Shown: positions 21,501 to 62,607, numbered from the stretch's first letter. The stretch is DNA of 64,000 nt from Macrostomum lignano (GCA_002269645.1 NIVC01003823.1:1-64000), one strand, 5' to 3'. The notes: generated by a model from the sequence alone, not told the origin. Made by a program: numbers and translations.

Positions 21501-24500
21501 AAAGCTACTCATGACGCAATTTCAGTTGCTGAACCAAAATCCCAACGTCGACTTTAAAGAGTTGGATGGTCTTCGTCTTATAGAAGGAATCTTAGAAGGC
21601 ATGCATAACGAATTGCGGCACCGACTGACACTGTAAGTTTAGTTACCTTGCCACGACTGCTTTTGAGTCTTAGCAGCAAGTTAGCCTCACCACATTTCGC
21701 TACGAAATTTCAGAACGACTAGATGCTATAGGTGTAATGGACGCTTACAGTCGCTCCTACGCCTGCCGTGTCAGGAACACCTTTGTCGAGATTGCCTCGT
21801 CAGGCGGATCTTGTCCGCAGCCGCGAAGCGCGACTGCTGCATTGATTTCAAGAATCGATGCAGCTGTCTCTTTCCTAACTTTCGTCGAATGAATCGCTAC
21901 CTTCTTCGAGAAGAAAACGCAAACACTTGTGCAGTTGTTCCTGGAGACGGACTGCATGACGTAGTAGCAGTTGAGTTTGAAGACATGGAAACCAATGAAG
22001 AGATGCAGAATGAACTGATAATGCAGGACAGTCGGGTTCTGGTTGGCTTAGCGAATTTATCTTTTGTTTGTCCCTCTTGTCGAAACGAGCATTTAGCCAC
22101 TGAGGTGTTTGGATCTCGCTTATTTGTAATACGGCAGTTCAAATCCAGGTGCAAGACTTTTCTACTGGAAGCCATCATGAAACTGTGCTTTGGGCAAGAC
22201 AGCAGGTCATTCAATAGCTACAATCGACCACCGAGTAGCGACCTCTGCGATAGGTTGCTTTTGTACGTTACAAGGGAAGGCGGAGACATTGAGCTCATTT
22301 CATGGACAACAGAAAGAGACGACGAAAATCCAGTGGTGTTCCGCTCGTTTCTTCTACAGCAGCTGCTTGCATTCAACAAAGAAAAAGTTTGCGACCAGCT
22401 AGACGAGCACTTAAGAGCCGCAGATAATATTGTCCGATCAACAGACAATTTAGTACTCATCGTCGTCCACTGTTTAGAGGTAAAACACTCGTTAAGAAAA
22501 TATTTAATTTAAAGCCAAATTCAGCAAACATAGCTCGTAAAAACAAGGCTTTCAAGCGAACTCACGTAATTTTCCGAAATTCAGGATTTGTGGATCTCCC
22601 GCCTCGCAACGCATCCCGTCGATCAACGACTAATGCGCGCCGTCATCGAGGTAGTCGACGCACCGGCTCCGAGAATTTTTCCTGAAGACTCTGACCCATT
22701 AGAACTGCAGCGGCTCCGTCAGGTGGCCGACTGGCGCGTCGCCCTGTCGCTGCTGGCCACCAGCATCGCCGCCCTGCCCGAAGGAGGGCAAATCGTCAAT
22801 CATCTGCCTCTTCTACAGGATGACCGACGTCGAGAGCAACTGGCCCGCTCGCTGCTGCAGCACCAGTGGTCACGGGTGTACTTCCTGCGCTGCCTCAGCC
22901 GCTTCGGCGGCACCTGCGCAGCGCTTGAGCGACTCCGAGCAGATGAATATTTGGCCAGGGTGTTCCGCGAGGAGATGCAGCTGATCGAAGGCCGGGTGGA
23001 ATTGCCAGACATCCTGCTGTGCCATTCGGACGTGTATAGAAATGTGCGCAGATGTCTGTATCAGGCCTACCTCACTGGAGAGCTCAATCAGCAGGTATGA
23101 TCAGCTGCCAGTGTTGGTCATTAATTGGATGTTAAGGTCGAGAAAGAGAAGAGCAGCCACCCCACAGCACACAGTGTACACAGCACACAGTGTACACAGC
23201 ACACAGTGTACACAGCATGCAATGTACACGCGACACTGAGTGAGGAGCAGCCACCCCACAACACGCAGAGTACACAGGACACTGATTGAGGAGCAGCCAC
23301 CCCACAACACGCAGTGTACACAGGGCACTGAGTGAAGATCAGCCACCCCACAGCACGCAGTGTACACAGGGCACTGAGTGAGGAGCAGCCACCCCACAGC
23401 ATACAGTTTACAAAGGACACTGATCAGCCACCCCACAGCACACAGTATACACCGGACACTGAAGATCAGCCACCCCACAGCACACAGTATACACCGGACA
23501 CTGAAGATCAGCCACCCCACAGCACACATTTTACAGCATAAGACTTTCCTGTTTCAGAGACCGGATTTCCCACCAGCCGAGAGTCCTATGGTGGCTCTGG
23601 TTGCCCTCGTCGCTGCCTACCGCCTTCGCCACATGCAAGGCAGGTGCGATGAGCAGCAGCTGACCGCCTGCATCAACTTGATGCTCAGCTGGATGACGCC
23701 CGCAGCCCAGGAGCTGTACAGGCGACTGGAGCCTCTGGCCGGGGCCACGGACGGCAATCATCAGCTTTGTCTGCTGCAGATTCACCTGGCCTTCGTGTTG
23801 GCAACCTGCCAGTCTGACATTGTCAACTTTCTCACTCAACTGCCGAACAACTTCAACAACTGGCTGCTGCCTGGCATGCGGCATGACGAGCTGTTCGAAG
23901 CTTTCACGGCTCAGGGAATCGGGGGCACCCGCGCCTATGGTGAGCTCGCTTGGGACTCTTCAATTAGTCTGCAAGACTATGGATTTTAACTGCTTCACTG
24001 GCTGTTGACTCATTTCAGCTTGCCCCAACGGCCACCCGTACTACATTGCTAATGTAAGTCTTTTGTATGTTGTTGACAGATAAGTTTGAGGTGGAGGCGC
24101 AAAGTGGGGATCGGAGATAAGAGGGTGGAGGCGCAAAGTTGGGGTCTTACTCAAGATTACGAAAGAGATTGAGAAATATATGATTGGCATCTGATAGCCA
24201 GGCAAGAAATTCGAGCTGATTTCAACCACAGCTAAAAATGCAAAAGCGATAAAATAATAATCGGTCATCTGGAAAGTTCTTGGCTGTCGTCATAACTTTA
24301 TGATGATCACGAAATTCGTGGACAAAAGACAAGCTCTTTCGACTTGGCCTGTCTGCTCTTTGCCATTTCTCTATCCATCAAAGTCTCTTGAACCCTCATC
24401 ATTCAATTGCCCATTTGACCCCGACTCTCCCATCCTACCAGTGCGGCCAGGCGATGCAGCTCGCCCGCTGCCCGGACTGCGGCAGCGCCATCGGCGGCCA

Positions 24501-29400: not shown

Positions 29401-29688
29401 CCATTTTGTATATGGTTCAAAGGAAGAGTTTACTGGAAGCAATGTTATTAGCTTAAAGCCAAAAGCAACAATCAATGAAATTGCTTCCAGGAAACATTTT
29501 TGCCCTGAACCGTCAACGAAAGGGAGCAATACCCAAATGATATACAACACACAAAATCAGTTTAGTACATTTTGGTGAATTCATTCAAAACTTATGCTTG
29601 AAAAAACCATCCCAATGCTAGTCTTGCAGTTAAAGCGTGGGGTGCTTTAATATATTCGACAAGCTTAACCCTAACCCTAACAAAATTT

Positions 29689-30713
29689 CGGAGATATGAA
29701 GTGTCGGAGATATGAAGTGTCGGAGATATGAAGTGTCGGAGATATGAAGTGTCGGAGATATGAAGTGTCGGAGATATGAAGTGTCGGAGATATGAAGTGT
29801 CGGAGATATGAAGTGTCGGAGATATGAAGTGTCGGAGATATGAAGTGTCGGAGATATGAAGTGTCGGAGATATGAAGTGTCGGAGATATGAAGTGTCGGA
29901 GATATGAAGTGTCAGAGATATGAAGTGTCAGAGATATGAAGTGTCGGAGATATGAAGTGTCGGAGATATGAAGTGTCGGAGATATGAAGTGTCGGAGATA
30001 TGAAGTGTCGGAGATATGAAGTGTCGGAGATATGAAGTGTCGGAGATATGAAGTGTCGGAGATATGAAGTGTCGGAGATATGAAGTGTCGGAGATATGAA
30101 GTGTCGGATATATGAAGCGTCGGAGACATGAAGTGTCGGAGATATGAAGTGTCGGAGATATGAAGTGTCGGAGATATGAAGTGTCGGAGATATGAAGTGT
30201 CGGAGATATGAAGTGTCGGAGATATGAAGTGTCGGAGATATGAAGTGTCGGAGATATGAAGTGTCGGAGATATGAAGTGTCGGAGATATGAAGTGTCGGA
30301 TATATGAAGCGTCGGAGACATGAAGTGTCGGAGATATGAAGTGTCGGAGATATGAAGTGTCGGAGATATGAAGTGTCGGAGAGATGAAGTGTCGGAGATA
30401 TGAAGTGTCGGAGATATGAAGTGTCGGAGATATGAAGTGTCGGAGATATGAAGTGTCGGAGATATGAAGTGTCGGAGATATGAAGTGTCGGAGATATGAA
30501 GTGTCGGAGATATGAAGTGTCGGAGATATGAAGTGTCGGAGATATGAAGTGTCGGAGATATGAAGTGTCGGAGATATGAAGTGTCGGAGATATGAAGTGT
30601 CGGAGATATGAAGTGTCGGAGATATGAAGTGTCGGAGATATGAAGTGTCGGAGATATGAAGTGTCGGAGATATGAAGTGTCGGAGATATGAAGTGTCGGA
30701 GATATGAAGTGTC
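29689..30713. repeat. 16-bp minisatellite (cggagatatgaagtgt) x ~64, preceded by telomere-like taaccctaaccctaac
   Basis: The array is very homogeneous. Telomere-like hexamers lie at 29666-29681. Confidence 0.97.
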
Positions 30714-32016: not shown

Positions 32017-32206
32017 TCACTGTCCTGCACCGTTGGTTTTTGCTGTTTTTCTACCGTCTTTGTTGTCGACGTCGCTGTCGCTGTCGCTGGCGTCTTCCAG
32101 CTCATCAACAGACACTGGAGTCACGCCGTAGGCTGCCAGGAGCTCCTGGTCGGCGGCCGGATCAGCAGCCGATGCTCCCGCAGCTGACGCCTGCGACTGC
32201 AAACCG

Positions 32207-32240
<34 letters not shown>

Positions 32241-35200
32241 GCTGTTGCTGCGACGGCTGCTTTTTGCCTGCCTTCTTTCGAGCGGCCTTCGGTATGTGGC
32301 TGGCGATTCTTCCGGTTTGCTGGTCGGCTATGTTCGGGTGCGGCCGAGCCACGGCCAGTTCGCCCTGTTGCGCCAGATTTATGAAGTACGGATCGACGTA
32401 CTTTTCTACGTAATCGGCGCAACCGCGAGGATCGTGCAGGCCGGGACGCATCGGCGCCTCCCAGAACCGCTCCTGGGTCTCCGGCAGCGGTTCCAGCTTA
32501 TTCAGCCGGATCTCCTCCAGCAGCCAAGCTGCCAAGTGTTCACCGAAACTTTCTCTAAATTTGCGCTGCATCTTGTCTTTGCCGCGAACGAACTTCATCT
32601 TCTTGACCGTTTTCGGATCGATGAACATTTTAATGGCGTTCCAGACGCCGTGAAATAGGCTGCTATGATTCACGCACACTATTCGGTCCATCTGTTCGGG
32701 GTAGAAGTTGCTGAACACGCTGACTACACCGTTAGCGAGGCCCGGGTTGCACTGCGGGAGGCTGAGGCCTGAAATTGGAGTTGCACTCGTCATTTTAATC
32801 GTTAAGCACCTAACAAAATGAATGCAAATCTAGTTTAAGCGCTTCGGATAACTAAATCAAGGTACTTAGACACCTCAACTACTTTTTTAGTTTTTCAGTT
32901 CAGTTTAGGCTACAAATGACTAATGCGTGATGAGCTACAAATTACTAATACGTGATTATCTACAAAGGACTAATACAAGATTATCTACAAAGTACTAATA
33001 CGTGATGATCTACAAAGGACTAATACGTGATGATCTACAAAGGACTAATACGTGATGATCTACAAAGGACTAATACGTGATGATCTACAAAGGACTATTA
33101 CGTGATGATCTACAAAGGACTAATACGTGATGATCTACAAAGGACTAATACGTGATGATCTACAAAGGACTAATACGTGATGATCTACAAAGGACTATTA
33201 CGTGATGAGCTACAAATTACTAATACGTGATTATCTACAAAGGACTAATACAAGATTATCTACAAAGTACTAATACGTGATGATCTACAAAGGACTATTA
33301 CGTGATGATCTACAAAGGACTAATACGTGATGATCTACAAAGGACTAATACGTGATCATCTACAAAGGACTAATACGTGATGAGCTACAAAGGACTAATA
33401 CGTGATGATCTACAAAGGACTAATACGTGATGATCTACAAAGGACTAATACGTGATGATCTACAAAGGACTATTACGTGATGATCTACAAAGGACTAATA
33501 CGTGATGATCTACAAAGGACTAATACGTGATCATCTACAAAGGACTAATACGTGATGAGCTACAAAGCACTGACAGGATTAAGCTCTAATGATAATCCAT
33601 GCATAAGGGCCAAGTGATGTTTAAATTAGTAAAAAGCAAAACAATATTCAAACCAATGCACCTGTGCAATCAATAACGAAGATCCAACTATTAACACCAG
33701 GTGCCATTGTCCTTTTAGCATTCTCCATCAAGTAGGTGCAGTGCGCCACAGAATCCTCAACGTTGTACCGAACAGCGTCGCCCTGAGAGAAGCTCGAGTA
33801 GATAACGGGTCGGCCTACTATATCAAAACCGACTTGCCGCTGCGGAAGAGACCAACGGTTTTTGGCTTTATTGACTGCTATTTAAAAAATGTTGAGTCAC
33901 GTCAAAACAAATTATGATTTGGGCAGTGATTGAAACTATTTCACATCTTTCTCTCTCTTGTTCTTTACCCCTTCCTCTACTCTGCCTCAACTGCAACATC
34001 TACCTTTTTGTATTACTTTATATCTACTTTTATATCTACCGCTATACATAACTACCGCTACCTCTCTGCCAAGTATGTCTCCTTTTTTTCTCTATTTCTT
34101 TTTTCAGTCATCTTGATATCTTTTGCTTCAGCTCTATTTTTTTCCGATTTAGCAGCAGAATTTGGATAGCCCAGCTCAAGCAGGGTGGACTAAGACTGAG
34201 CAGAAATCCAGTTCCCCGAGGCTTAGCTCACGCTTGAGGAAGCTGCAATTTTCTGTTGCATTTTGGGCTGAAACCGGCGCACAAGACTATGAGAAGCAAT
34301 CGAAACCGCCACCGCTTCTCCTTGTTAGGAAATTTCTAAATCCCGATTCTAATTCCCCAATGATTGCCCCCTGTCCCCTTAAGCCTCTTGTCAGCCAAAA
34401 CAGACACGAATCTTTTAAATTTCTAATGGGTAAAATTATCGAGCATTATTAATATAGCTTTTTGCGGCCCATCCGGGCCCACGCGCATTGAATTTAATCC
34501 AAGATATGTTTGTCAAAGTAATGGAGCTTTTGTCTATGGTAGCAAGGCTGGCACAGCGGCACCCAATCCGGTCCAACAAGCATCAATTTGATCCATTTAG
34601 TTCATTTGCAGCTCAGCCCCAGAATTGTGGACCATATGCTAGGCTGTTGAACGAATGTCATTGGCTTGTGATCGAAGCACTCGACGGAGGTGAACACCCA
34701 AAGGACATTGCAAGGTTGCTGAATGTAAAAGAAAAGGTGGTTTACAACATCTAGCAGCGCGTTGAAACTCTGCCGGCAGAGATTGCCTGCGAAAGGGTGG
34801 CAATCGCCAAGGAAAGTTGCTCGAGAGCCTCAGGTCCAACTGCTACTCGATGCAGTGGAGACGAACCCTTTGTTGAAGTTTCAGAAAATGCAGCAGAAGT
34901 TGAGGGAACAGCTCCAGTTGGTTATCAGATTTCGACTATCAGCAGAGCTCTGGAAAAGCAACTGAAAATTTTAGGTAGAGACGCTGACATTCCAGCGGTG
35001 CGCAACAACCTGCAGACGGTTGAGAGAAGGCAAGAGTTTGTCCTATGGCTCACGAGTGTTTGGACCAAATGGATGCTTGCTGGACCAAATGAAACGCCGC
35101 TGCGCCAGCCCCGCCACCATAGACAAAAGCTCCGTCACATTGGCAAACGTATCTTGGATTAAATTAAATGCGCGTAAGCCCAAATGGGCTGCAAAATGCT

Positions 35201-36252: not shown

Positions 36253-39044
36253 AAGACAGACAGAGAAACTGTTGAAAGGCTTGGATCGATGGAGTGGCTT
36301 TGCTAGTAAATGTGAAAAAATTTTTAGATAGGGATAGGAATAGGGACAGGGATAGTAATAGGGACAGGGATAGGAATAGGGATAGGAATAGGGATAAGGA
36401 TAGGAATAGGGATAGGATAGGGATAGGGATAAGGATAGGAATACGGATAGGAATAGGGATAGGAATAGGGATAGGAATAGGAGTAGGGATAGAATAGGGA
36501 TAGGAATAGGGATAAGGATAGGAATAGGGATAGGATAGGGATAGGAATAGGGATAAGGATAGGAATAGGGATAGGGATAGAAATAGGGATAGGAATAGGG
36601 ATAGGGATAGGAATAGGAATAGGAATAGGGATAGGGATAGGAATAGGGATAGGATAGGGATAGGAATAGGGACAGGGATAGGAATAGGGATAGGAATAGG
36701 GATAAGGATAGGAATAGGGATAGGATAGGGATAGGGATAAGGATAGGAATAAGGATAGGAATAGGGATAGGAATAGGGATAGGAATAGGAATAGGGATAG
36801 AATAGGGATATGAATAGGGATAAGGATAGGAATAGGGATAGGATAGGGATAGGAATAGGGATAAGGATAGGAATAGGGATAGGGATAGAAATAGGGATAG
36901 GAATAGGGATAGGGATAGGAATAGGAATAGGAATAGGGATAGGGATAGGAATAGGGATAGGATAGGGATAGGAATAGGGATAGGAATAGGAATAGGGATA
37001 GAATAGGGATAGGAATATGGATAAGGATAGGAATAGGGATAGGATAGGGATAGGAATAGGAATAGGGATAGGATAGGGATAGGAATAGGAATAGGGATAG
37101 AATAGGGATAGGGATAGGGATAGGAATAGGAATAGGGATAGAATAGGGATAGGAATAGGGATAAGGATAGGAATAGGGATAGGATAGGGATAGGAATAGG
37201 GATAAGGATAGGAATAGGGATAGGGATAGAAATAGGGATAGGAATAGGGATAGGGATAGGAATAGGAATAGGAATAGGGATAGGGATAGGAATAGCGATA
37301 GGATAGGGATAGGAATAGGGATGGGAATAGGAATAGGGATAGAATAGGGATAGGAATATGGATAAGGATAGGAATAGGGATAGGATAGGGATAGGAATAG
37401 GAATAGGGATAGGAGAGGGATAGGAATAGGGATAGAATAGGGATAGGAATAGGAATAGGGATAGGATAGGGATAGGAATAGGGATAGGAATAGGAATAGG
37501 GATAGAATAGGGATAGGAATATGGATAAGGATAGGAATAGGGATAGGATAGGGATAGGAATAGGAATAGGGATAGGGATAGGAATAGGAATAGGATAGGA
37601 ATAGGGATAGGAATAGGGATAAGGATAGGAATAGGGATAGGAATAGGGATAAGGATAGGAATAGGGATAGGAATAAGGATAGAAATAGGGATAAGGACTG
37701 GGATGGGGATAAGGATATGGACAGGGATAAAGACGGGGCGGAGACAGAGACAGACACGGAAAGACAGGGACAGGCACCAAGAAAGAGGGACAAACACGGA
37801 GAGACAGGAATTCAGGCAATGAATGCGAGAATAAAATTGCTTGAAATAATTCAGTAGAGATGGGGACACAGCTACAAAGGACCAATGCAGCATCAATGAG
37901 ACTCTCACCATGCTGTGATACCCAGGCTGCTCGTGGCACCATCGACAGTCGACAGTCAGCGGTTGATAGGATCGTCTCCAAGCGATGGCATCGCGCAGCT
38001 GCTTCTCAGCGGCGTCCAAGTTCCACTCGCGGGCTTTGAGAAATCGGACCAGCCTTTGAAATGGCGAATCGCGTATAAAAATCAATGAAATTGACTTCCT
38101 TTCTCAACTATTGTAATCTTTTGCCATCATTGTCCTCATTGACTGACCCCCCCCACTCCACATTGTGATCCGTAACGGAAATTAACGGATCTAAAAAGAG
38201 TGTCTGCAGCGCCACAATAAGTGCCTAAGGCGCCAAATAGAGTGTCTGTGGCACTAGAATGAGTGCCTGCGGCGCCAAAATAGAGTGCCTGCGGCGCCAC
38301 AATGAGTGCCTTCGGCGCCAAAATGGATTGCTTGCGGCGCCAAAATAGAGCGTCTGCGGCGCCAAAATGGATTGCCTCCGGCGCAAAACTGGAGTGCCTG
38401 CGGCGCCAAAATGGGTGCCTTCGGCGCCAAAATGGATTGCCTGCGGCTCAAAACTGGAGTGCCTGCGGCGCCAAAATGGGTGCCTTCGGCGCCAAAATGG
38501 ATTGCCTGCGGCGCAAAACTGGAGTGCCTGCGGCGCCAAAATGGGTGCCTGCAACGCTAAAATGAGTGCCTGCAACGCTAAAATGAGTGCCTGCCTGCAG
38601 CGCCACAATGAGTGCCTGCGGCGCAAAAATGAGTGCCTGCGGCGCAAAACTGGAGTGCCTGCGGCGCCAAAATGGGTGCCTTCGGCGCCAAAATGGATTG
38701 CCTGCGGCGCAAAACTGGAGTGCCTGCGGCGCCAAAATGAGTGCCTGCAACGCTAAAATGAGTGCCTGCCTGCAGCGCCACAATGAGTGCCTGCGGCGCA
38801 AAAATGAGTGCTATCAACACCTATTCCCAAAATAATGTAGGAATTTATTCATGCAGAATTCTTGGCTTTGTCCCCTCATAATAAAATCCATGGCGACGCC
38901 CCTGCTGTACAGATCAAGCAAAACTCACGTCTCTTCTTCCTGGAAATAGTTCTCTCCAGCTAGTCGCTCCACATCAGACACTCGAGATAGCAGCTCTGAG
39001 AGCAGCTGCTGATGACGGGCGGCTTCGGAAGCTGAGCTGCTCAT
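32017..39044 (-). CDS. CRAL-TRIO/SEC14-domain lipid-binding protein, 4 exons, ~396 aa, with a polyQ/acidic tail
   Basis: Exons 39044-38929 (MSSSASEAARHQQLL..), 38053-37909 (LVRFLKAREWNLDAAEKQLRDAIAWRR), 33839-33662 (QVGFDIVGRPVIY..WIFVIDCT) and 32768-32017 (NFYPEQMDRIVCVN..FHGVWNAIKMFIDPKTVKKMKF). All junctions are GT-AG and phase-consistent (2,0,1). Confidence 0.9.
32910..33570. repeat. 25-bp minisatellite x ~26 in CRAL-TRIO intron 3
   Basis: Unit ctacaaaggactaatacgtgatgat. A variant block recurs at ~32933 and ~33207. Confidence 0.95.
34640..35170 (+). mobile_element. Tc1/IS630-like transposase remnant (HTH region), frameshifted
   Basis: Fragments LVIEALDGGEHPKDIARLLNVKEKVVYNI, QVQLLLDAVETNP..KMQQKLRE and ISTISRALEK..IPAVRNNLQTVERRQEFV match the N-terminal HTH/linker pattern of Tc1-like transposases. 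Stops and frameshifts are present. Confidence 0.6.
36168..36252. repeat. (GA)n microsatellite
   Basis: Direct dinucleotide run. Confidence 0.97.
36328..37730. repeat. Purine-rich GGATA/GGAATA/GGGATA simple satellite (~1.4 kb) in CRAL-TRIO intron 2
   Basis: Mixed 5-6 bp units. This repeat explains the spurious IPIPIP/YPYSY ORFs on the minus strand. Confidence 0.97.
38200..38810. repeat. ~20-21-bp GC-rich minisatellite with higher-order blocks in CRAL-TRIO intron 1
   Basis: Units gagtgcctgcggcgccaaaat / ggattgcctgcggcgcaaaact alternate. Confidence 0.9.
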
Positions 39045-41764: not shown

Positions 41765-42890
41765 TCTTTTGCATCATGAGATGACTACCAAGACAATGAC
41801 ATCACTGACATCTGCGGAATTTACTGCTCGCAGGCTCGAATTGAGTAAGAAATCCTCATATTTAGCAGAAACGAATTGAAAACACTGATTTGTAATTTCG
41901 ACAGTTTTGCAAGCTTGTGTACCATGCAACTTAATAGAAGCTTAACACGTTAGTTTGATTTTGTACATCTACTACTAGATGCGATTAGATTCAGTGAACT
42001 TTTCATGCTCCATAAATTATAAATCCAAATAGGAAAGGTCATGCTAAGTTGCAGTGGCATTCAGGCTACGCTTTTGGCATACCGGCAGCACAAAGAATGC
42101 CTCCATGACTAAGTTCCATATGTTTTGTGCTGGGGGCAATTTGGGTTCGCAAACGCTTTTCTGGAGGAAAGGCAATTAGTGGCTGGGTATCATGCAGGAT
42201 GCATCGAGGACGGGGTTCAATGCACCGGAGGTTGGGAAATTTTGCACCAGTTGTACAGGTAACCATCTGCACTCCCATCCTTGGACAGAGACAGAGGATC
42301 ACGTTTTGCGCAGCCCTTGCCTTACCTGGGCTATTCCTCACCAGCGCAGTACTTATCGATCGGAGGGTTCGAACCTGGTGCCGAAATCGCCATTCAAAAG
42401 TGCTTTGATCGTCGCTCCGGCGCATTAAACATGATTAAAATACCGAACTAGCACACACGTGCTTTCGGGAAAACGCAGTAAAGTATCATTTGGGAGGATC
42501 GAAGACTGCTGCAGAAACCTCCCAGCAAGATTTTTGCTTCATAAATTCAGTGCACGCTCTACAGGGTACCGGTGTGTACGCAGACGCAAGCACAGCTGAC
42601 GCAGCAGAAAGAGTCCTGGATTCTAAACCTGGCATTCATTTCTGGAACCAACTGCCGGCCGAGCGACCAAGTCATTCTTCATATTTTTCCACACCGCTTC
42701 TGCATCTCAGCCCACCTTAGTCTACACGAGCGGACTGACCCGAGCCTGTCACCGACAGTAAAAATTCTGAAAAAATGGAGCCTGTAGAATACATGTAGAC
42801 TGAAGATAAATTCCTTCCGTATTCATTCTTACCCTTTCTCTTATGTGCTTTTATTTGTGTCTAGCGTTGGAAACTTTGGTATATATATAG

Positions 42891-45800
42891 ATGCCGGGGC
42901 AGCCGGCCAGTGACAAAGGACGCAGCGACAACACGGGTATTGCCGCCAGGCATTCAAGCGTTCGTCATCGACCTCTGCTGCCTAAGCAATATTCATTGGC
43001 TCAACAGCAGCACGAGCAGCAGCAGCTGCAGCAACATCAGCAATTCAGTGAAGAACAGCAGCTCCGACAGGAGCAACTACCGAAGACACCGGCAGCGATG
43101 GATAGCAAAAAGCCTCCTGGTACCAGAATTTCCATACGGATTAACGATTCCGACGACGTCGTCAGCGGTTCGACGCGCCGGCATGTACAATATCGACGAC
43201 AAGAGCTGAAACAGCTGCGCAGGCAGAGATTCGAATCGGCTTCGTCCAACACCGGCGACTCTATCGACACCGGTCGCGACTATTCTGCTCTTCAAAGGCG
43301 CCGAAATTCGAGACCTGTCCGGGAGGTCCGAACTAATCGGCCGCCTGGATTCTTTCGCAACTTGATCATTGCGCCGAGCATATCGCCATCGATAAAGAAG
43401 AAAGATGATGTGATAATGACGCCACTCATGCAAGCATACTACAATGGTGAGCTCAATAAGCTCGAGTCCATGTTGACAGGCTCGAACCTCTACGAATGCC
43501 ATAAATGTCACCAAACCCTGGCTGACATAGCAGCTGCTGATGGTCACTTGCACGTGCTGGACATTCTGCACAACAGAGGCGTAGATTTCAACAAGAAAAA
43601 TCCGGGAAATTACGTGCCTCTGCACTACGCCGTGGAGAGCCAGCAGACTCGAGTCATGAGAAAACTGGTTGCCTTGGGCGCCAACCCGAACATTCCTCTG
43701 CCAAGCGGGGAGTACCCTCTGCACAGAGCGTGTGGGTTTCAAACCAACGACGTTCTCTCTTGTCTTTTAAGTAAGCAAACTATATTTCATATTGGTTAAG
43801 AACTATTCAATACTACCTTTATGAGAGTGCATAGAGTATTTTCTTTACTTTCAGGAATTTGTAAGGCTGACGTTGACGTGAGTGACCGTCAGGGCAACAG
43901 CCCTCTGCACCGAGCTTGCCTTGAAGATTCAACTATTCATGTGAAGACGCTTCTTGAGTACTGCAGCCAGGATGTCATCAACCTAAAGGGATACGAAGGC
44001 AAAACGGCCCTGCACATTGCCGTGATCAACCAGAACCGCAATATCACGGCCATGCTTCTCAACAATGGCGCATTTGTTGATATCCAGTCGGACAGCAAGA
44101 AGACGGTGATTGATCAGGTCTTGGGTCTCGGCAGCGTTGTTCTCATGAGCGATCTCGCCTACTTCTTCACTCAGGAGATGACAAAAAGCGAGGCGCGGTC
44201 ATTTAGCGAACTTTTCCAAGACCCACAGTTTCAGCAGTACCTCAACTTTCTAGATGCTGTCGACAATGAGTTCCAATTGTGCCAGATAAAATACGATGAG
44301 CTATCCAGGGATGAGGAGGCCGAGCTGCTCTCAAAGCTAGAAAAAGACGACAAGATAGACCTCATCGAGTTCAAAGACGTCGTGCTGAAGCTTCTTCAAA
44401 CAGAAGCAATTCATGTTCTTCTAGATCCAGGAAATAAGGATGTCTTACTGAAGACTTGCTCAAATATCGTTCGCTATGTTCTCTTTAGAGAGGACAGTGT
44501 GATGCTCGAGCGAATTATGAACTGCGGTCTTATTTGGTTTGAAATTCGAGCTCACATAGAGGAGCACATCGATGAGCTGTATGTTCATACGCCAAACCGA
44601 GGCAACAATGGAATCGTATCCCACTTGACGAATAACTTCATATCCGATCACCGGCTGGACAGGGAAGCGTTTACTCGGTTTTACGGACAAAAATGTTCAA
44701 ATTTCAAACTTCGCGCCTACCGCGAGGTAGAGTTTCAAGCACAGTCAGACTATATGCGTCACCCCATGGACACTCTGGTCATGTGGTCGATTTTTACTGG
44801 CCGCTTCAAGCTAACGGAAATCCTTCTGCGTCAGGAAAAGTTTGACGTTGTGCCACTTGGTCTCTACTGCGCTAGTGTGCTTCGGGCATTCGCAACAATC
44901 CCAAGTATGTCGGTGGACGCCGCAGAAATGGAGCAACTAGCAAGCACCTGTGAGTTGTTTGCTGCGCAGATTGTAAAGAACGTGTATCAGTTGGACACTT
45001 CGTTCAACAAGCAGACAACTGTTGACTATCTTCTTCTTAGATTGCCCTCATATGGCGACATCACTTGCATTCAGCTTGCTGCTAGAAACAGTTCCTCGAA
45101 GTTCCTGCAGACTGAAGCAGGCCAGGAGGCCTTGAACAAGAGCTGGTTCGGTTTCCTACTTCACATCAACACCTACGTCCGTGAAGTGCTAATCTGGCTT
45201 GGTCTCATACCGCTGAACTTATTCATCCCAGTTATACTACTCTATCTGGAAAAGAAGTACACGGAAAAGGCAAACAAGTTGGACAAAAACGCAGAACTCT
45301 TTCAGAAAGATAGCGCAAAGACATCCGGCAATCCATCATGCGATTTCCTCCTGCCGGAATCGATGAGAAGTGCTCAAGAAAATAATCCCACACCTGTGAT
45401 GGCCAGACGCACTCGTTCCTCCGAGCTGAGGCCACTAGTACGATCTCGAGAACAATTGAGCCAATCAATGACGTCACTTAATTCAATGCCTGAATTTGTA
45501 ACCAAAGAAACAGAAAACGAAGAGACAGCAAGCAGTTATTCGCCAGATGGTCCGTCCATCTTTAGCTGGGAGTACATCCGTCTGCTGCTCAGCCTGCTGT
45601 ACGGCTTCTACCGCATACCAGCCGTAAAATTTCGATACCACGCAATTTCGCACATAATTTTGCTACTTTTGTTGTCTTACATTGTTCTGCTGGAGTTCGA
45701 TTACGAACTCAGCGCGCCTGAGGTAATCGCCTACACGATCATATTTGGATTTCTGATGGAGGAGCTTGCGGAGTTTGTACAGTATCTACTGCTGCACGAG

Positions 45801-47908
45801 ACAATATCTGATTTCTTTTCGAGCAAATGGAACATTATCGACCTATTGGCCCTTTTATCTGCGGTGATAGGTTTTGCACTGCGAATCTCTCGATACGACA
45901 GATCGATTCCCACCCATGAAAGGTCTTTAGAGATGGCCTTTGATGATACACTTTGGTACAACGCTAGACTCTTCCTCGGTAAGCTTTTTGATACTTTACT
46001 TAGATTTTATACCAGCAGAACTAATGCTCCTAAGTTTATAAAGCCATCTCTCAAGTTGCCATATCCCCTGCAGAACTACTCCACATAATTAAGATTTATG
46101 TCCCATAGAAAGTTATGTACATGTAAATTACCCTCATTATTTCACTCTAAGTCGAACCTAAGTTGATTCCAAGCGAAGAGTCACGTTTATATTCATTAAA
46201 ACGTCGCTCCTAAGTTCACGTCACCCCCAAAGTAGCTATCCAGAAGTATAATATGACATAATTCTTTAAAGGGCCTGTCAACTAAAGGTCATATAGTGAA
46301 GCTCGAGTAACCTATGTAGACAAATGATGTCATTCTGCTCACAATGACACTAGGAAGCTGGGTTTGGCAAAAAAGCTACGAAAATTGGATTTGGGATAGG
46401 GCAGAACAAGCAAGGCGATAATTAGGGACTCTACTTTATAAGCTTATGTTGGCATAATAGTCCTTAATAGTCCTTAAGTCGACAGGCCCTTTTAATTTTC
46501 GGATTTTCAATCCTCACACTAGGCACGTCCTGCATGCTCTACTGGGTTCGTCTGTTGTACATTTCAACCGTTCTCGAGGAGCTTGGACCCAAGCTGAAAA
46601 TGATAGCTACAATGATTATCAAGGACATGATGCCTTTCCTGTTCATTCTGTTCATCTTCATACTTGGCTTCGGCGTGCTGATTCACGGCCTGTTGTTTCC
46701 GAACGGGTACTACGCTTGGAACTCGGACAAGATGACCACCAGCGAGGTTTTGGTTGCCATGTTTCGGATCTGCTTCTACAGCATGGTCGGCGAGTACAGT
46801 CTGGATCTCATTGAAGGCGACTCGGAATGCGACGACATCTACAATAATAAGACTAAGAATGGGAAGTCGTGCCCGCATCAATTTGGCCGGTAGGTCACTT
46901 CAGGAATCCAATCATTAGAAGTATTGAACCCTAAAATAATCAAAATGCTTCAAGTGCATCCACGAGTACCTAGTATTGACCCGTTCATGTATGCTAGTAA
47001 GATTATTTATTTAATTTAAGAAAAACTGCTCTAAGTTAACGTGAAGCTTTACAGTGACTATCCAAGTGGGATTTCTGTGGCACTATAATAGTTCTACCAT
47101 TTTCGGCTAGGTAATCCCCACGACAACTTATAAGTAATTTTCCCAATCAATTATTCGCAAAACAACCACCTACCTCCCAAGATATCTGGTGCCGAATCTC
47201 GTCATGCCGTTGTACGTGATCATCACGGAGATCCTTCTGCTAAACCTGATAATTGCGCTATTCAGCAGAACAATCGAAGAGATTGACTCGAGGAGCAAAG
47301 CGCTTTGGCAGTTCGAGCGTCACGAACTCATCGAAGAGTTCCAGACGCGTTCCTGCCTGCCACCGCCATTCAACATATTTGACATTTTCAGGCGAGTTCT
47401 GGGTCGGAACTGGAGAAGTTATCGTCGCGAGTCGCGGGGTGCACCTCAACAAAGCTCCGACGAAAAGAAAGAGCTGGACAAGGAACTGGTGCTGCAGTTT
47501 CTGCTCTACCAGGCATTCAGTCTGCGCAACAATCGCGAGAAATTCATGGCTAGCAGTTCGCCAAAGGAGGAGGATGAAAAAGACGAACTCCTGGCGAGGC
47601 TGCGCGAGATGATCAAAGAGGAGCTGGCCAAGAACAACAAAGCTGCGGCTGCGGCTGCGGCGGAAGCCGCGGCAACCGGAAGCTGGGCAGTTGGTGAAGC
47701 TCGAATCGATGATACTCGTGGCACTCTAATGGAGACGACACCTTCGCGGGTGAAACTGCAGTCACCGAAACAGCAGTCGGCTCAGAGACCAAAGCCAGCT
47801 GATGAGCAGCCGGCAACACTGCAGCCGCAGGTGTCTCAAGAAGACGCAGGTGCTTTGATGGCACTGATGGAATCAGATGCGGACCTGGATGATTACGATG
47901 CCATTTAA
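42891..47908 (+). CDS. TRP cation channel with ~6 N-terminal ankyrin repeats and a TRPM-type body, 4 exons, 1365 aa
   Basis: Exons 42891-43770, 43855-45978, 46523-46889 and 47182-47908 total 4098 nt with GT-AG junctions and phases 1,1,2. Ankyrin motifs: VPLHYAV, YPLHRAC, SPLHRAC, TALHIAV. TRPM motifs: LVMWSIFTGRFKL, YGDITCIQLA, FYRIPAVKF, KWNIIDL, LGPKLKMI..M..D, NLIIALF, LWQFERHELIEEF, LPPPFNIF. Confidence 0.9.
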
Positions 47909-51678: not shown

Positions 51679-52983
51679 CTATTCAAGGAAGGGCCAAACC
51701 AGGAACGCGAACAAAATGGTGAAAATCGCCACACAACCCATAACGGCCATAAGCCGCTCCACGGCGGTTGAAGCTGTTTTCCAGTCCGAGCGCCTCTCGC
51801 CGTCATCGCTCGCCTTGCTCACCGCGGAGTCATCGCTGTCTCTTTCTGGCGCCGTCCTGACGCCCCCTCGTCGCTCACCGCACAGCAGCGCTCGGCCCAG
51901 GCAACACACGAACACGAACCGGAGACACGACGGCATCGGCTGAGACTCCGCAGCGAAGTGGAACCGAATCGCCACCGCCGTGAGCAGCAGAGACGTCGTC
52001 GACAGCACCATGGCCGCCGTGATGAATGACGCCACGGCCGGCATCGACTGCGACTTGGGCAGCAGGCCGTCCAGCAGCAGCAGGAACACCGTGTAGCTCA
52101 GCATGATGGTGATGCCGAAGCTCAGCTTCTCTCCAGACTCGACTGGCACGAAGAAGACGAGCACCTGGAGCAGCGTGAGCAGCAGCAGGGGAGTAACCAC
52201 GTTGAGCATGTAGTAAGTGGACACCCGCTCGATCTCCAGTTGTACCACGTAGGTCGGCAGCGGCATTTTCGGTTGTCCTTTGAAAACTTCATACTTTTTG
52301 TTGCGCACGAACGTGCTCAAGTTCAGCAGATTCCATTCGCTGTTCCTAACATAGGCCCCCACTTCATTGAATTCCACTGATGGGCCATACTGAAGGCTGC
52401 CCTTTTTTACAGCAGGATGTCCTTTTCCCCGCCCCTGATCGTTAGCGAACAACTCCAAGTCGCAGGTGTGCCGATCGAACGGAAACCGACGCATGTCGAA
52501 TTCGCAGGAGAACTCCCACTCACGCCTCCAGATGGCTGATACCACTGACTTTTCTGGTGCCACGGATGTGATGTAGGGTGGGAACTGTGGACTCAGAAGC
52601 TGGTTTTCTCCAATGCCAGTGCACAAAAATATCACGGGGAAGTAGATTCTGCCGATCTCCCAATCTATCACAGTGATGTTGCCAAACTCTTTAGGATCCC
52701 AGACCAGTCTTTCCTCATACCAAGTTGCAAACATCAGGGCAGTAATTTTAATGCTCTGCTTGGCGCTGTCCACACTCACAATCTGACCTATCGAGGTGGA
52801 CAAGTAGACGCTCATTGACTGACTGTCCAAGGCTGGTAGCAGAGTCGGGCTGTAGTCTGTGATGTTGTTTTTCAGATACTTCAGCAAAGCCGCCTCGAAA
52901 TCTTGCTTAGGCATCTTGGAGTAGCAGCTGGTCAGCTGGGTTGCGATGGCAACAAAAAGCAATAATTTTCTGAGCTGCAACAT
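51679..52983 (-). CDS. Intronless Cys-loop ligand-gated ion channel subunit (nAChR/5-HT3-like, cation-type), 434 aa
   Basis: Signal peptide MLQLRKLLLFVAIATQLTSCYS, then WYEERLVWDP, the Cys-loop CEFDMRRFPFDRHTC, the M1-M2 linker VPVESGEKLSFGITIMLSYTVF and four hydrophobic helices. Single open frame. Confidence 0.92.
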   Translation of the reverse strand: MLQLRKLLLFVAIATQLTSCYSKMPKQDFEAALLKYLKNNITDYSPTLLPALDSQSMSVYLSTSIGQIVSVDSAKQSIKITALMFATWYEERLVWDPKEFGNITVIDWEIGRIYFPVIFLCTGIGENQLLSPQFPPYITSVAPEKSVVSAIWRREWEFSCEFDMRRFPFDRHTCDLELFANDQGRGKGHPAVKKGSLQYGPSVEFNEVGAYVRNSEWNLLNLSTFVRNKKYEVFKGQPKMPLPTYVVQLEIERVSTYYMLNVVTPLLLLTLLQVLVFFVPVESGEKLSFGITIMLSYTVFLLLLDGLLPKSQSMPAVASFITAAMVLSTTSLLLTAVAIRFHFAAESQPMPSCLRFVFVCCLGRALLCGERRGGVRTAPERDSDDSAVSKASDDGERRSDWKTASTAVERLMAVMGCVAIFTILFAFLVWPFLE

Positions 52984-53975
52984 TTTAGTGAAACAATTGC
53001 GGGTAGAGTCAGTCGATGCAGCTCGCGTGACAAGTATCAATTCTAAGGTAGTGAATGCCTTTAATATTGCATTTCGACACTCAAATATACTTCTCCACAG
53101 CCAATGAAGATCGATTCAAGGTGAGTTTCTTAAGCTTAAAGGAATTCAGCGTCGCTAAAGTCTGAGCTAGAAGCACCATCACGAGCAGACTTTATTTAAT
53201 GAAAGCTTTTCCCGCCGAACAGGTTCGGTAAACAAGAAGGTTCAGTGCGGAGAGGGTTAGCTTCATCGAATTTCTGGATCGCAATTCGCAAAGCTATAGT
53301 ATGGACTATTTGAGGGTAAGTTGACTCTGCTAGACAATGGGAGCAGTGCGCTTTACCTTCTGCAAATTTGAACTAGAATTCAATTCCTTTTAAGCAGTAC
53401 ACACATCTTTGCTGGGAGCTTTCAGTCAGCTTGAGAACCAGAAATTTTACTCTCCAAAAGCCCATTGCTGAGCCTAGTTTTACATACCTCTACCACAATG
53501 AATCTCTCTCACTTTCTCTCTTCAGTCCCAATTCTTCACTACTTCTGTTTGCCACTTCAATAGCAGGAAAATCCGTTGTCATGGACGCTAGCTCACGCTA
53601 TTCATGGAAAGCAAGTGATATCTATTATTCATGAGGCTGAGCCCACTTAATTCTCTACAGTGAATTAGACGGAGAACAATTTCAAATTTCTTTCTGAGGC
53701 AGCGCGATGCAACCCCAAGGTACAGAGAGTGTACATGCCTGACCATTTGAAAGTCAAAGGGCCGCTGAACATCCTGTGTGAGCGCGTGTATGAGTGCATG
53801 CCTGCGCACAGCATTGGCGCCCTTGTATGTGATCAGGAGTCAGTGGAATGGACTGAATTGCCTGAGCGCTGATTGTGGGACGATGTCACTGAAATACAAA
53901 GAAATAGTCCAGTCCCACTAGTTGCGGTTGAAAGCTTCTATTGAGAAGTCACATGACAATCGAAGGACAGAAAGA

Positions 53976-55439: not shown

Positions 55440-58400
55440 GCTAGTAACTAACTAAGAATACACTAAGAATAATCACAATATACTAAATCTCTAAGGTTTG
55501 ACCGGTATTCCAGTCTACAGCCTGAATGCCTGAACCGATTTTTTTCAAACTTGCTTCATTCAATTGCATAACACCACAGTGTCACACTTCCCCCTGAGTC
55601 AGTTCCCCCCTTCACAGCTGTAGTCTCTGAGGTGGGCCTCGAACCCTCAGTGGTTACCGCCGAGAAGTGCCAGGCTCGAGTCGCACACCGCTCGTAGGCT
55701 CGTAGGCTCGACGTCAGTGCCGGACGCCCCCTCGCTGGCCGTGACGGCGGGGGTTTCGGCGTCAGCGCTTCGCACGCCACTGTCACTCGGGGCGGCGCCG
55801 TCATCCGTAGCAGGCGGCGGATGGACGGTGTCAGCGGAGTCAGCGCGGGCTGCCACCAGCTGATCAGTGTGCCGGAAGTGCTGGCCACGCTCCGAGTCAA
55901 CCGTGTAGTTGCGGCTGCCGGCGCCCGTGACGACGCCCTCAGCCCAGCGTGGCATGTCGCCGGCTCTCGCGCCGGCGCTGTAGTCGCGGAGGAGGACGTG
56001 ATCACCCAGCTGAAACTCGCGCGCCGGTCTGCGTCCCTGCAGCTGTCGCTCCTGCCGCCGTTGAACGTCATCGGTCAGCGACGGTGCCAAGAGGTCCAGG
56101 CGGCAGCGAAGCCGACGGCCGATGAGCAGCTGACTCGGGGCAACGCCGCTGATGCTGTGTGGAGTGTTGCAAAAGCTGAGCAGCAGTCGCTGAAGCTCGA
56201 CGTCGGAGTGGCCGCTCTTGAGCAGATGTCGCTTCAGGACTTGCACAAACCTCTCGGGGTCTACGACGTTTGCCTGCGGGACGTTTGCCAGCCGACGTTT
56301 GCCTGCGGGACGTTTGCCAGCCGACATTTGCCAGCCGACGTTTGCCAGCCGACGTTTGCCAGCGGGACGTTTGCCAGCCGAAGTTTGTCTGCCGGACGTT
56401 TGCCTGCGGGACGTTTGCCAGCCGACGTTTGCCAGCCGACGTTTGCCAGCCGACATTTGCCAGCCGACATTTGCCAGCCGACATTTGCCAGCCGACGTTT
56501 GCCAGCGGGACGTTTGCCAGTCGGACGTTTGCCAGCCGACATTTGCCAGCCGACGTTTGCCTGCCGGACGTTTGCCTGCCGGACGTTTGCCAGCCGACGT
56601 TTGCCAGCCGGAAGTTTGCCAGCCAAAATTTGCTAGCCAATATAGAGCCAGTTAGTGAAAAATTTGATACTGAAACATTCGCAGTTTAGCGGTTTGACAA
56701 AAACCGTTTTTACTCCAACTTTTTGACGGTTATTTGCATATATACAAGTTTGAAAGCAAAATCTATAAATTATGAAATTTATGCAAAATCTATATAAATT
56801 ATGCAATTTATATAGATTTACATCTAATATCCAGTTTAACAACGATTTTCTTTGAATGTGAAAATATTGTTTACTTTTGACAATTGTGTATCGTTTTTCC
56901 CAGTTTGAGATGTTTGATTTTTGATGTGCGAAAGAAGACGCGCAGATTACAACGGGAATCTCCAGCGATTAAGTTAATGAGGCAAACAAAAAGAGCTGCT
57001 GAGCGGTAATTCTGGCTCATATATTTCTCAGTTCATTGGGAGATCTAAAAGTAAGCAAATTGATTCCAATGCTGTTGTATTACTACTCAAGTAAGCAAGG
57101 AAACCGCGATCTCAACGTACATGTGTAGACGAGTCGAATGCGGTACGTTTTTATAGTAAGCTATATAGCTGAATAGCCAGACAAGCCGCCAGTAGCAAGC
57201 TAGTAGAATAGCAAGCGCTAGACACTACGTATGCAAAGCTTAGTCATGCCAAGGACTACTAAAGTAGAAGTACGCAGCACTCGAAATCTATGAAAAATGT
57301 TTTGAAGGCCATAGGGAGATAGGAAGTTTTCATCTTTTCAGCACAACAATTGTTATTGCTTTCATACGAGGCAAACCCAATGTTCATCTTTTGATATGTT
57401 GTGCCAAAATCGTTGTTAAACTAGATATTAGACGTTAGACTGATGAACTGCATAATTTATATATTTTGCTTTCAAACTTGTATACATGCGAATAACCGTC
57501 AAAAAGTTGGAGTAAAAACGGTTTTTGTCAAACCGCTAAACTGCGAATGTTTCAGTATCAAATTTTTCACTGACTGGCTTTATATTGGCTAGCAAATTTT
57601 GGCTGGCAAACTTCCGGCAGGCAAACGTCGGCTGGCAAACGTCGGCTGGCAAACGTCCGGCAGGCAAACGTCCGGCAGGCAAACTTCGGCTGGCAAACGT
57701 CCGGCAGGCAAACTTCGGCTGGCAAACGTCCCACTGGCAAACGTCGGCTGGCAAACTTCGGCTGGCAAATGTCGGCTGGCAAACGTCCCGCAGGCAAACG
57801 TCGGCTGGCAAACGTCCCGCAGGCAAACGTCGCTATCCCAACCTCTCGGCCTGGCCGTTGGTGGCGGCATGAAACGGCGTCGAGAACACGTGACGAATGC
57901 CGTTAGCCCAGGTGAGCTCGGCGAACTCAGCGGAGGCGAACTGCGACCCGTTGTCGGACACCACGGTGCGTGGAATGCCTTGGCGCGCGAACATCTCCCG
58001 CAGCGCCGCGATGGTGGCCGCCGACGTTGTAACGCGCATCCGCTGGACCTCCGGCCACTTGCTATGAGCATCGACCACCACAGGTACGTGTGACCGTCGA
58101 CCGGACTGGCAAAGTCGCTCCCATGGCTCGGACGGCAGAGGACACGGTTGCACCGGCGCCTTGGGCGGGTCGGGCTGGTTGAGCTGACAGGTGCGGCAGG
58201 ACTTGGCCACGGCTACCGGCCAAGTCCTGCCAAGGCCGAAGCCAAGGCTGGGCCACCACACGTAGCTGCGAGCCAGGGAGCGCATTCTGATGATGCCGGA
58301 ATGCGCCTGATGTAACTCTTGGATCACGTGTTGACGCAGCGCGGTCGGCACGACGACCTTTGCGCCCCACAGGACACAATCTTGGTCGACCGGTTGGCCG

Positions 58401-59545
58401 CCGGGCGAAGTCGCTCAGGTTAGCGCCGATGGGCGCGCTGGTTTGTAAGCAGCGAAGCACCCGACCGAGTGAGGCGTCCGTCCTAGTGTGCCGCGCCACC
58501 GCCAGCGCCGTGATGGCCGACCCAGAGCCCTCGTCGAGCAGCAGTGAGTTGACGGCCGCCTCCTCCTCGAACAGGTGCGACAGCGGCAGCCGCGAGAGCG
58601 AGTCGCAGTTTGCATGCGTTTCGGTCGGCCTGAACTCCAGCGTATAGTCGTAGCTCGACAGCCGAATGGCTCAGCACTGCATCCGGGCGGCCGGCCGCGT
58701 GTGCCGGGATGCCCTTGCGCTCGCCAAGCAGACCCAGCAGCGGCAGATTTGGATTGTAGTGCACGACAACCGAGGACTCGAGCAGCAGCCGCTTGGCCTC
58801 TGCGAATGCCTGTTGCTGCGGTGGCCCCATGACCAGCGAGTGTTCTTGGCCAAGAGCTGGTGGAGCGGCGCCAGACAAGTTGGGCAGGAACTTGCAGTAC
58901 TGCGCTAGCATGCCCAGAAACGAGTGCAGCTGGCTGACGTCCTTGGGTGCTGGCGCGTCCTGGACGGCGGTGACCCGATCCGGCAGCGGCTTGAGTCCGC
59001 TGGCATCGATCCGATGGCTGAGGTACTCAACAGAGTCCTCGAAGAATTTGCATTTCTCCTTGTTGAGTCGTAGGCCGGGGTCCTTAAAGCGCCGCAGGAC
59101 CAGCGCCAGGTTCCTCTTGTGCTGTTCCATTGTGCTGCCGGTGACCAGAATGTCTTCGACGAAGATTTGGACGGCGTCCAGGTCTCCCAGAAGGGTGTCC
59201 AGGGTGCGTTGAAAGATCGCGCTGGCGCTCGTGATACCGAATGGGAGGCGATTGACCTGGAAGAGGCCTTTAGACGTGTTGATGGTGAGAAACGCCTTTC
59301 TGTCGTCGGCCAGCGCGGGTGCTGCAAGGTGTTGGACAGTTCGAGCTTGGTCCACTTGAAGCCGCCGCCGAGCTTGGCGAAGAGGTCCTCGATGCGAGGC
59401 AGCGGGTAGTGCTCCGGCTTGCTCGCCGTGTTGTAGGTCGTCAGCTTGTGTAGTCCCCGCAAATCCGAACGCTGCCGTCCTTCTTGACGACCGGCACGAT
59501 CCGCGCAGCCCAGTCGCTGTGCTTCACGGCGGTGATGATGCCACT
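55440..59545 (-). mobile_element. Decayed Ty3/Gypsy LTR retrotransposon (RT, RNase H remnant, integrase, PPT, start of 3' LTR)
   Basis: RT: YPLPRIEDLF..GLFQVNRLPFGITSASAIFQR..IFVEDILV. Integrase: HQAHSGIIRMRSLARSYVWWP..C..C, VVVDAHSKWPEV, SDNGSQF and NGQAER|FVQVLK. The PPT agggggaag (55595-55587) is followed by TGTGAC. Many frameshifts; gag and the 5' LTR are absent. Confidence 0.92.
56257..57839. mobile_element. Foldback/MULE-like non-autonomous element with minisatellite-containing TIRs and a 9-bp TSD, inserted in the Gypsy integrase
   Basis: TSD aacctctcg at 56248-56256 and 57840-57848; termini GGG...CCC. The outer arms are arrays of ~10-14 bp ccgacgtttgccag units; the inner ~230 bp unique arms are reverse complements. 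Confidence 0.9.

Positions 59546-61153: not shown

Positions 61154-62607
<1,454 letters not shown>

Follow-up and report, generated by a model that had tools for sequence, protein, structure and literature searches.

The gene on the plus strand at positions 42891–47908 of the window, the 64,000-nucleotide stretch of Macrostomum lignano DNA analyzed here (assembly GCA_002269645.1, NIVC01003823.1:1–64000), is very probably an intact M. lignano gene of the ankyrin-TRPM ("TRPM-like") family, of which the characterized member is TRPM_MCLZ. TRPM_MCLZ (Smp_333650) is the meclonazepam target of parasitic flatworms, and carries N-terminal ankyrin repeats with MHR1/2-SLOG missing (PMC11731825, PMC10788528, PMC12861061). 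A first-pass annotation of the window had proposed that the protein encoded at this locus has a TRPM-type body in which ankyrin repeats substitute for SLOG/MHR1-2, and this arrangement held in a Pfam scan, in the comparison with a SLOG profile and in an AlphaFold2 (AF2) model. The novelty that the annotation implied fails, since the combination of ankyrin repeats with a TRPM body has already been described for TRPM_MCLZ and the window protein falls within that clade. What is modestly new is the presence of the family in the early-branching, free-living Macrostomum, its expansion in this worm into 11 or more divergent paralogue groups, and the retention by the M. lignano paralogues of a TRPM3/7-like V-G-E filter together with a WQFER TRP box, the parasite channels having lost that filter.

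The coding sequence, obtained by joining open reading frames (ORFs) in the window DNA, is 4098 nucleotides (nt) in length (1365 codons plus the stop codon) and is composed of four exons, all on the plus strand, connected through three introns with GTAAG or GTAGG donors and AG acceptors. Exon 1 (42891–43770), ending at a GTAAGC donor at 43771, encodes amino acids (aa) 1–293 and the first base of codon 294, and covers a Q-rich, probably disordered N-terminus (aa 1–177) and ankyrin repeats 1–4a. Exon 2 (43855–45978) is a single uninterrupted ORF of 2124 nt that encodes aa 294–1001 and the first base of codon 1002; it includes ankyrin repeats 4b–7, MHR3/4, a disordered insert, pre-S1, S1–S3 and the first half of S4, and the Pfam Ank and PF25508 matches both fall within it. 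The end of S4, the S4–S5 linker, S5, the pore helix, the filter and the turret with C1104 and C1118 are encoded by exon 3 (46523–46889, aa 1002–1123), and exon 4 (47182–47908, aa 1124–1365 plus stop) carries S6, the TRP helix (WQFER 1166–1170, LPPPF), two cytosolic helices, a putative coiled-coil helix (aa 1255–1289) and an acidic tail. The intact 1365-aa protein and the coordinates of its four exons are identical to those of the first-pass annotation, which had also placed the last ankyrin repeats and the TRPM body in the single exon 43855–45978, now confirmed as one uninterrupted frame. Because ankyrin repeats 4–7, MHR3/4 and S1 to mid-S4 are contained within exon 2 alone, the fusion is not an artefact of splicing. 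The ATG is immediately preceded by tatatatag (window 42879–42893), of which the AG is a candidate acceptor for spliced-leader trans-splicing or for a 5' untranslated region intron; trans-splicing is known in M. lignano.

The predicted protein is 99.7% identical, with four substitutions, to the GenBank entry "hypothetical protein BOX15_Mlig030565g1", and contig NIVC01003499.1 of the same assembly runs collinear with window positions 33883–55793 at 97–99.6% identity, with indels such as one of about 95 bp in intron 2. Judged by sequence comparison, the window locus is a second copy or an allele of the GenBank locus on NIVC01003499.1. The latter copy is composed of the same four exons with no gaps and no disruption; exon 1 is identical, and a total of 11 codons differ in the gene, seven of them synonymously and four non-synonymously (S834T, L872F, A1335V and G1347S), three of these four being within predicted disordered segments. 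The intact frame in the second copy and the predominance of synonymous differences argue for a constrained, functional gene.

By the Pfam scan, Ank, Ank_2, Ank_3, Ank_4 and Ank_5 were identified above the cut-off over approximately aa 175–372 (E 1e-12 to 1e-25), the TRPM2-like domain (MHR3/4, PF25508) at aa 549–711 and Ion_trans at aa 894–1162, while neither LSDAT/SLOG nor NUDIX was matched anywhere in the 1365-aa protein, in agreement with the lack of NUDT9H noted beforehand. The AF2 model was built from a 16-sequence family alignment and covers aa 165–1290 with a mean pLDDT of 78 and a pTM of 0.71. From the Pfam matches and the AF2 helices, the ankyrin array is placed at aa 178–403 (43422–44183, broken by intron 1 at 43771–43854); in the model it forms seven helix pairs with a strict 33-residue period and a pLDDT of about 90, consisting of six canonical repeats and a cap, so that the array itself stands as previously proposed and the number of repeats, given before as about six, is corrected to six to seven. 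The array is followed by an all-helical segment of linker, MHR3/MHR4 and hydrophobic pre-S1 elbow (44184–45299, aa 404–775; PF25508), and then by a low-complexity insert of about 85 aa between MHR4 and pre-S1 (45300–45554, aa 776–860), which is predicted to be disordered (model residues 612–696, pLDDT <50) and varies between paralogues. No alpha/beta fold was found in the N-terminal region of the AF2 model, in which the cytosolic domain is all-helical, and when the ankyrin and linker regions were compared locally with a profile of 45 SLOG sequences by hhalign, the probability stayed below 1%. A possible SLOG remnant, suggested by a near-global hhalign alignment of moderate posterior between the end of SLOG and the last ankyrin repeat with the helix behind it, was rejected on account of this local probability.

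The channel domain (45567–47347, aa 865–1179), as delineated by Ion_trans, phmmer and AF2 helices, contains introns 2 and 3 and is arranged in the order pre-S1, S1 (882–907), S2 (914–941), S3 (951–971), S4 (approximately 992–1017), S5 (1037–1059), pore helix (1074–1090) and S6 (1123–1150), followed by the TRP helix (aa 1155–1179, from AF2 helices). Behind the TRP helix, AF2 placed two cytosolic helices and then a 35-residue terminal helix (aa 1255–1289), the latter being consistent with a TRPM-type coiled coil. The filter is V1090-G1091-E1092 (46786–46794, in MVGEY), of which G-E aligns with the Y-G-E-V motif of TRPM3. The motifs quoted in the first-pass annotation were all found in the protein, including MLERIMNCGL, LVMWSIFTGRFKL, YGDITCIQLA, LGPKLKMI, MVGEY, the turret pair C1104 and C1118, WQFER and LPPPF, and the motifs of the pore, the TRP helix and the S1–S4 domain (VSLD) are all intact.

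That the channel body belongs to the TRPM lineage, and not to TRPN, TRPC or TRPA, is upheld by the agreement between scores against PDB and a neighbor-joining (NJ) tree. When the transmembrane (TM) region (aa 860–1206) was compared with PDB by phmmer, the best 60 matches were all TRPM chains, with bit scores of 115 for TRPM3, 107 for Nematostella TRPM2, 102 for TRPM5, 101 for TRPM1 and 98 for TRPM8, and lower scores for TRPM2 (93), TRPM4 (87) and TRPM7 (78); the channel part of NOMPC scored 32. In the cytosolic part, MHR4 of TRPM8 (544–724) aligns to aa 579–768, and the profile of the cytosolic domain matched canonical TRPM N-termini with an hhalign probability of 99.1%, the alignment being confident from MHR3 onward. 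Upon Foldseek search with the AF2 model, TM-scores of 0.32–0.40 were obtained for TRPM2/3/4/5/8 and 0.28 for NOMPC. In the NJ tree of TM columns, NOMPC was placed as the outgroup to all TRPM-like sequences with 100% support. The TRPM bit scores far above that of NOMPC, the match in MHR3/4 and the outgroup position of NOMPC altogether indicate that the body is TRPM-type. Among the features of canonical TRPM (melastatin) channels, MHR3/4, the channel domain, the TRP box and the coiled coil are present and the N-terminal SLOG/MHR1-2 is absent; SLOG plus Nudix, which characterize TRPS (soromelastatin) together with a divergent TRP box 2, is not found by Pfam in either part, and the channel domain does not group with TRPN, TRPA, TRPC or TRPV.

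When 1.84 billion representative proteins were searched exhaustively by hidden Markov model (HMM) with a profile of the post-ankyrin body, a total of 2417 matches were identified. All matches above approximately 250 bits have ankyrin repeats (ANK), MHR3/4 and the TM domain without SLOG, and the canonical SLOG-bearing TRPMs rank only below them. Word-indexed searches, whether the query was the channel body alone or a profile of nine sequences, recovered no more than three proteins, all from M. lignano; the family was revealed by the exhaustive search. The ANK-only relatives include proteins of the trematodes Opisthorchis viverrini, O. felineus, Dicrocoelium dendriticum and Fasciolopsis buski, of the cestode Schistocephalus solidus and of the monogenean Protopolystoma xenopodis, besides a few from assemblies (DRR639838 Logan, ERZ8811445 ENA), and the M. 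lignano loci Mlig019746, 023207, 012389, 033956/026745, 022043/007691, 004154, 011337, 008432/029514 and 000356. Together with the window locus and P0003, the latter form at least 11 paralogue groups that are 33–66% identical in the channel region, and the architecture recurs in over 25 proteins of eight or more flatworm genera. In an NJ tree of MHR4, TM and TRP columns (472 columns, 70 sequences), the ANK-only clade received 99.5% bootstrap support, and the M. lignano members formed a subgroup supported at 100%. When parasite proteins were used as phmmer queries, by their MHR4 or their TM region, the best M. lignano matches were always of the ANK type, ahead of the SLOG-type TRPMs of M. lignano. 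The M. lignano paralogues are, as a group, co-orthologous to the single parasite gene.

Some gene models in this set are of unusual composition. The O. viverrini models P0126/P0275 (1906–2059 aa) contain two Ion_trans channel domains in tandem, matching the duplicated channel exon (3a/3b) reported for TRPM_MCLZ in Opisthorchiida (PMC12861061), the two copies being apparently concatenated by annotation. In the M. lignano model P0004, which is present only in UniRef, a fatty-acid-hydroxylase-like domain (PF04116) is fused to an ANK-TRPM, and the model ends after S1; its annotation is probably chimeric or truncated.

The published architecture of TRPM_MCLZ is the same in all essentials: in a 2024 review the protein is described as having ankyrin-repeat modules instead of an NH2-terminal MHR1/2 or SLOG domain (PMC11731825), and Rohr et al. 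(2026) catalogued 63 orthologues from trematodes, monogeneans and cestodes, pointed out the N-terminal ankyrins, and proposed the group name "TRPM-like" (PMC12861061). The meclonazepam-evoked current of Sm.TRPM_MCLZ, as described by Park et al., has a linear current–voltage relation and reverses near 0 mV, with Ca2+ entry and a partial block by Mg2+ (PMC10788528). Planarian homologues of Smp_333650 with 32–35% identity over 900–1100 residues are listed in a supplementary BLAST table (PMC12058154), and no mention of Macrostomum or discussion of free-living flatworm homologues was found in PMC11731825, PMC10788528 or PMC12861061. The published drug-binding pocket of Sm.TRPM_MCLZ consists of H827, H831, Y864, E868, I892, D893, R943, H946, Y1117, R1120 and T1121. 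The trematode and cestode members of the clade identified here carry these residues, apart from H946, at the identical spacing of 37/25/50; they have Tyr at the S4 gatekeeper in Plagiorchiida, and the cestode has Phe, Lys, Ser and D893E, in line with the variants published in PMC12861061. Given this match in residues, spacing and S4 variants, and the duplicated channel exon, the parasite proteins are identified as TRPM_MCLZ orthologues. The window protein keeps seven of the 11 pocket residues (H889, H893, E930, I955, D956, R1011 and R1180) at a spacing of 37/26/55; the other four positions are conservatively substituted (F926, Y1014, F1177 and S1181), three of them by residues that occur as natural variants in parasites.

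Several observations weigh against the membership of the window gene in the TRPM_MCLZ family. With TM columns alone, the ANK-only clade received an NJ bootstrap of only 56%; the addition of the MHR4 columns resolves the clade itself, not its placement within TRPM. The TM region is 35–36% identical to canonical TRPMs and 33–35% to parasite ANK-TRPMs. The window gene is divided into four exons with the channel domain split, whereas the parasite genes have three exons with the channel in one, the last. The trees are by neighbor joining only, with the TRPS reference sequences (ced-11) and Smp_333650 left out, and the orthology of the parasite clade to TRPM_MCLZ is drawn from published residues, spacings, naming and exon structure, not from the Smp_333650 sequence.

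Of the other readings considered, a recently duplicated, decaying or unexpressed paralogue within the large M. lignano expansion is improbable: the genome, which shows hidden polyploidy, contains numerous members of the family, both near-identical and divergent, but the frame of 1365 codons and the canonical splice sites are intact in both copies, and the differences between these are distributed as described above, with the pore, TRP and VSLD motifs unimpaired. An undescribed domain-swapped TRPM lineage, or a new TRP subfamily, is hardly more credible and, if anything, a shade less so. This reading would be in line with the general TRP phylogeny, in which ankyrin repeats are stated to be absent from TRPM and TRPS (PMC7306681), with the finding of no Platyhelminthes terms in that paper or in a 2026 paper on TRPM evolution, and with the annotation of the protein as "hypothetical" only; against it, the exact architecture is described for TRPM_MCLZ under the name "TRPM-like", and the window protein groups with TRPM_MCLZ-type proteins and has the S1 HxxxH and seven of the 11 VSLD pocket residues in common with them.

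It is highly improbable that the fusion was generated by annotation or assembly, through erroneous joining of an ankyrin gene to an N-terminally truncated TRPM gene or through a chimeric join. M. lignano gene models are sometimes chimeric, as in the case of P0004, but here the 2124-nt exon runs continuously from ankyrin repeat 4 into S4, the independent genomic copy on NIVC01003499.1 is alike in exon structure and ORF, and the architecture recurs, as noted above, across at least eight flatworm genera. The possibility that the protein is a TRPN-, TRPA- or TRPC-type channel with ancestral ankyrins and convergent TRPM-like motifs can practically be dismissed. NOMPC is indeed the top PDB match of the whole protein by sequence, and the top Foldseek match by E-value, but it takes this position because of its ankyrin array; its channel part scores 32 bits against 98–115 bits for the leading TRPMs, the NOMPC sequences form the fully supported outgroup, MHR3/4, specific to TRPM/TRPS, lies between ankyrins and channel, and the succession of TRP box and LPPPF is TRPM-type. 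The gene is best interpreted as a member of the ankyrin-TRPM family.

Within this family, the window protein agrees with Sm.TRPM_MCLZ and its orthologues in the N-terminal ankyrins, the lack of SLOG/MHR1-2, the presence of MHR3/4, TRPM-type S1–S6 and TRP helix, the short C-terminus without an enzyme domain, the S1 HxxxH and the pocket residues H, H, E, I, D, R and R. It differs in its origin from a free-living macrostomorphan as one of at least 11 paralogue groups, the parasites having a single gene; in the filter, which is V-G-E as opposed to F-E/D without Gly in the parasite TRPM_MCLZ-type proteins; in the TRP box, WQFER as opposed to W(L/M)A(G/D/E)R; and in the pocket by Y864F, H946Y, Y1117F and T1121S. 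With canonical TRPMs, of which TRPM3, Nematostella TRPM2, TRPM5 and TRPM8 are the closest solved, it shares MHR3/4, the pre-S1 elbow, S1–S6, the turret disulfide pair, the TRP box with a PPP motif behind it, the C-terminal coiled coil and the positions of the VSLD Ca2+ site, but it lacks SLOG/MHR1-2, NUDT9H and the kinase, and has canonical N-terminal ankyrins and the insert of about 85 aa before pre-S1. N-terminal ankyrins upstream of a six-TM TRP channel with TRP helix are also known in NOMPC/TRPN and in TRPA, TRPC and TRPV; however, NOMPC has 29 repeats as compared with six to seven in the window protein, MHR3/4 stands between repeats and channel in the latter, and its channel domain is far closer to TRPM than to NOMPC/TRPN.

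A further type of flatworm protein bears on the origin of the architecture. ANK-SLOG-TRPM proteins, with Pfam-significant ankyrins at the extreme N-terminus as in the window protein but with an intact SLOG between the ankyrin repeats and MHR3/4, were identified in M. lignano (Mlig003066 and Mlig025325g2), Clonorchis (KAG5447154), O. viverrini (T265_14336) and S. mekongi (KAK4474030), and no discussion of this architecture was found in the literature examined. They belong to the neighboring flatworm TRPM group in the TM tree, where the sister relationship between the ANK-only clade and the group containing the ANK-SLOG proteins received 30% NJ support. By phmmer ranking, the ankyrin regions of ANK-only and ANK-SLOG-TRPMs were not separated from those of generic ankyrin proteins. 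The existence of ANK-SLOG-TRPMs in flatworms allows a route in two steps, acquisition of the ankyrins and subsequent loss of SLOG, as an alternative to a swap in one step. Of the domain-swapped TRPM-lineage channel put forward by the first-pass annotation, the TRPM lineage is retained, and the swap becomes one possible history besides the loss of SLOG from an ANK-SLOG-TRPM ancestor. As a tentative proposal, and one that is rather doubtful as a whole, ANK-TRPM could date back to the base of Rhabditophora or earlier, formed by deletion of SLOG from such an ancestor, and could then have radiated in free-living worms into a dozen sensory-receptor-like, divalent-permeable channels with the G-E filter, the parasites keeping one derived copy, the drug target; both Macrostomum and trematodes still possess proteins of the intermediate type. 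If this were true, the physiology and the natural ligands of the TRPM_MCLZ family could be explored in M. lignano as a tractable, free-living model with transgenesis.

By analogy with the characterized member, the window protein would most likely form a tetramer held by the C-terminal coiled coil and conduct cations non-selectively, as does Sm.TRPM_MCLZ. Ca2+ and other divalents would likely be permeant, given that the V-G-E filter belongs to the type seen in TRPM1/3/6/7 and that Ca2+ enters through Sm.TRPM_MCLZ; in TRPM7, the equivalent Glu is needed for divalent permeation. Gating would probably proceed through the S1–S4 cavity and the TRP helix, where meclonazepam is bound in TRPM_MCLZ. Acidic or amide residues are located at the aligned VSLD positions E930, E933, N953, D956 and E1176, which we take to be those of the VSLD Ca2+ site of TRPM2/4/5/8, making Ca2+-dependent gating plausible. 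The lack of both SLOG and NUDT9H, as read from the protein sequence, excludes ADP-ribose gating of the TRPM2 style. With Y1014 at the S4 position equivalent to H946, in addition to the changes equivalent to Y864F, Y1117F and T1121S, a weak response or no response to meclonazepam is predicted. For the ankyrin array, a platform for docking or regulation in the cytosol would be the most likely role.

The surroundings of the gene within the window include coding segments, retroelement remnants and satellites. Upstream on the plus strand, very long ORFs are located at 13205–25281, one of 734 aa and one of 1510 aa with an AAA/P-loop region at aa 394–526, together with an RZ-type zinc finger at 24388–25281; these probably belong to one giant NTPase/RZ-finger gene. 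At 3.8 kb downstream and on the opposite strand, a Cys-loop ligand-gated ion channel of 453 aa (51679–53040, minus strand; Neur_chan_LBD and Neur_chan_memb) is encoded by a single exon. Also on the minus strand are ORFs with a CRAL/TRIO domain (32017–32793) and with a tubulin GTPase domain (61749–62402), each probably an exon of a neighboring gene, and two retroelement remnants, one with RNase H and zf-RVT (3039–4121) and the other an RVT_1 reverse-transcriptase fragment (58483–59355). Satellite arrays were found at 36327–37729, 29688–30713, 32910–33571, 38198–38811 and 90–563, the repeat units comprising GATAGG in about 238 copies (GC skew 0.75), a 16-mer in 64 copies, a 25-mer in 26 copies, a 21/65/196-mer array and a 47-mer in 10 copies. 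Two tandem arrays with a 14/29-nt unit, at 56264–56638 and 57587–57832, are mutual reverse complements (CGACGTTTGCCAGC and GGCTGGCAAACGTC) and enclose about 950 bp in a foldback-like or inverted-repeat structure.

The basic picture published for the parasites is left unchanged by these findings. In schistosomes, two TRP channels are validated as drug targets, TRPM_MCLZ being one of them, and the present results indicate that the ankyrin-TRPM family predates parasitism. If so, the claim that TRPMs lack ankyrins, which stems from TRP phylogenies omitting flatworms, needs to be qualified; M. lignano, in which RNA interference and transgenesis are established in the laboratory, could serve for work on the family, and its paralogues would offer natural variation in the VSLD pocket and the pore, such as Tyr at the S4 gatekeeper and the intact G-E filter.

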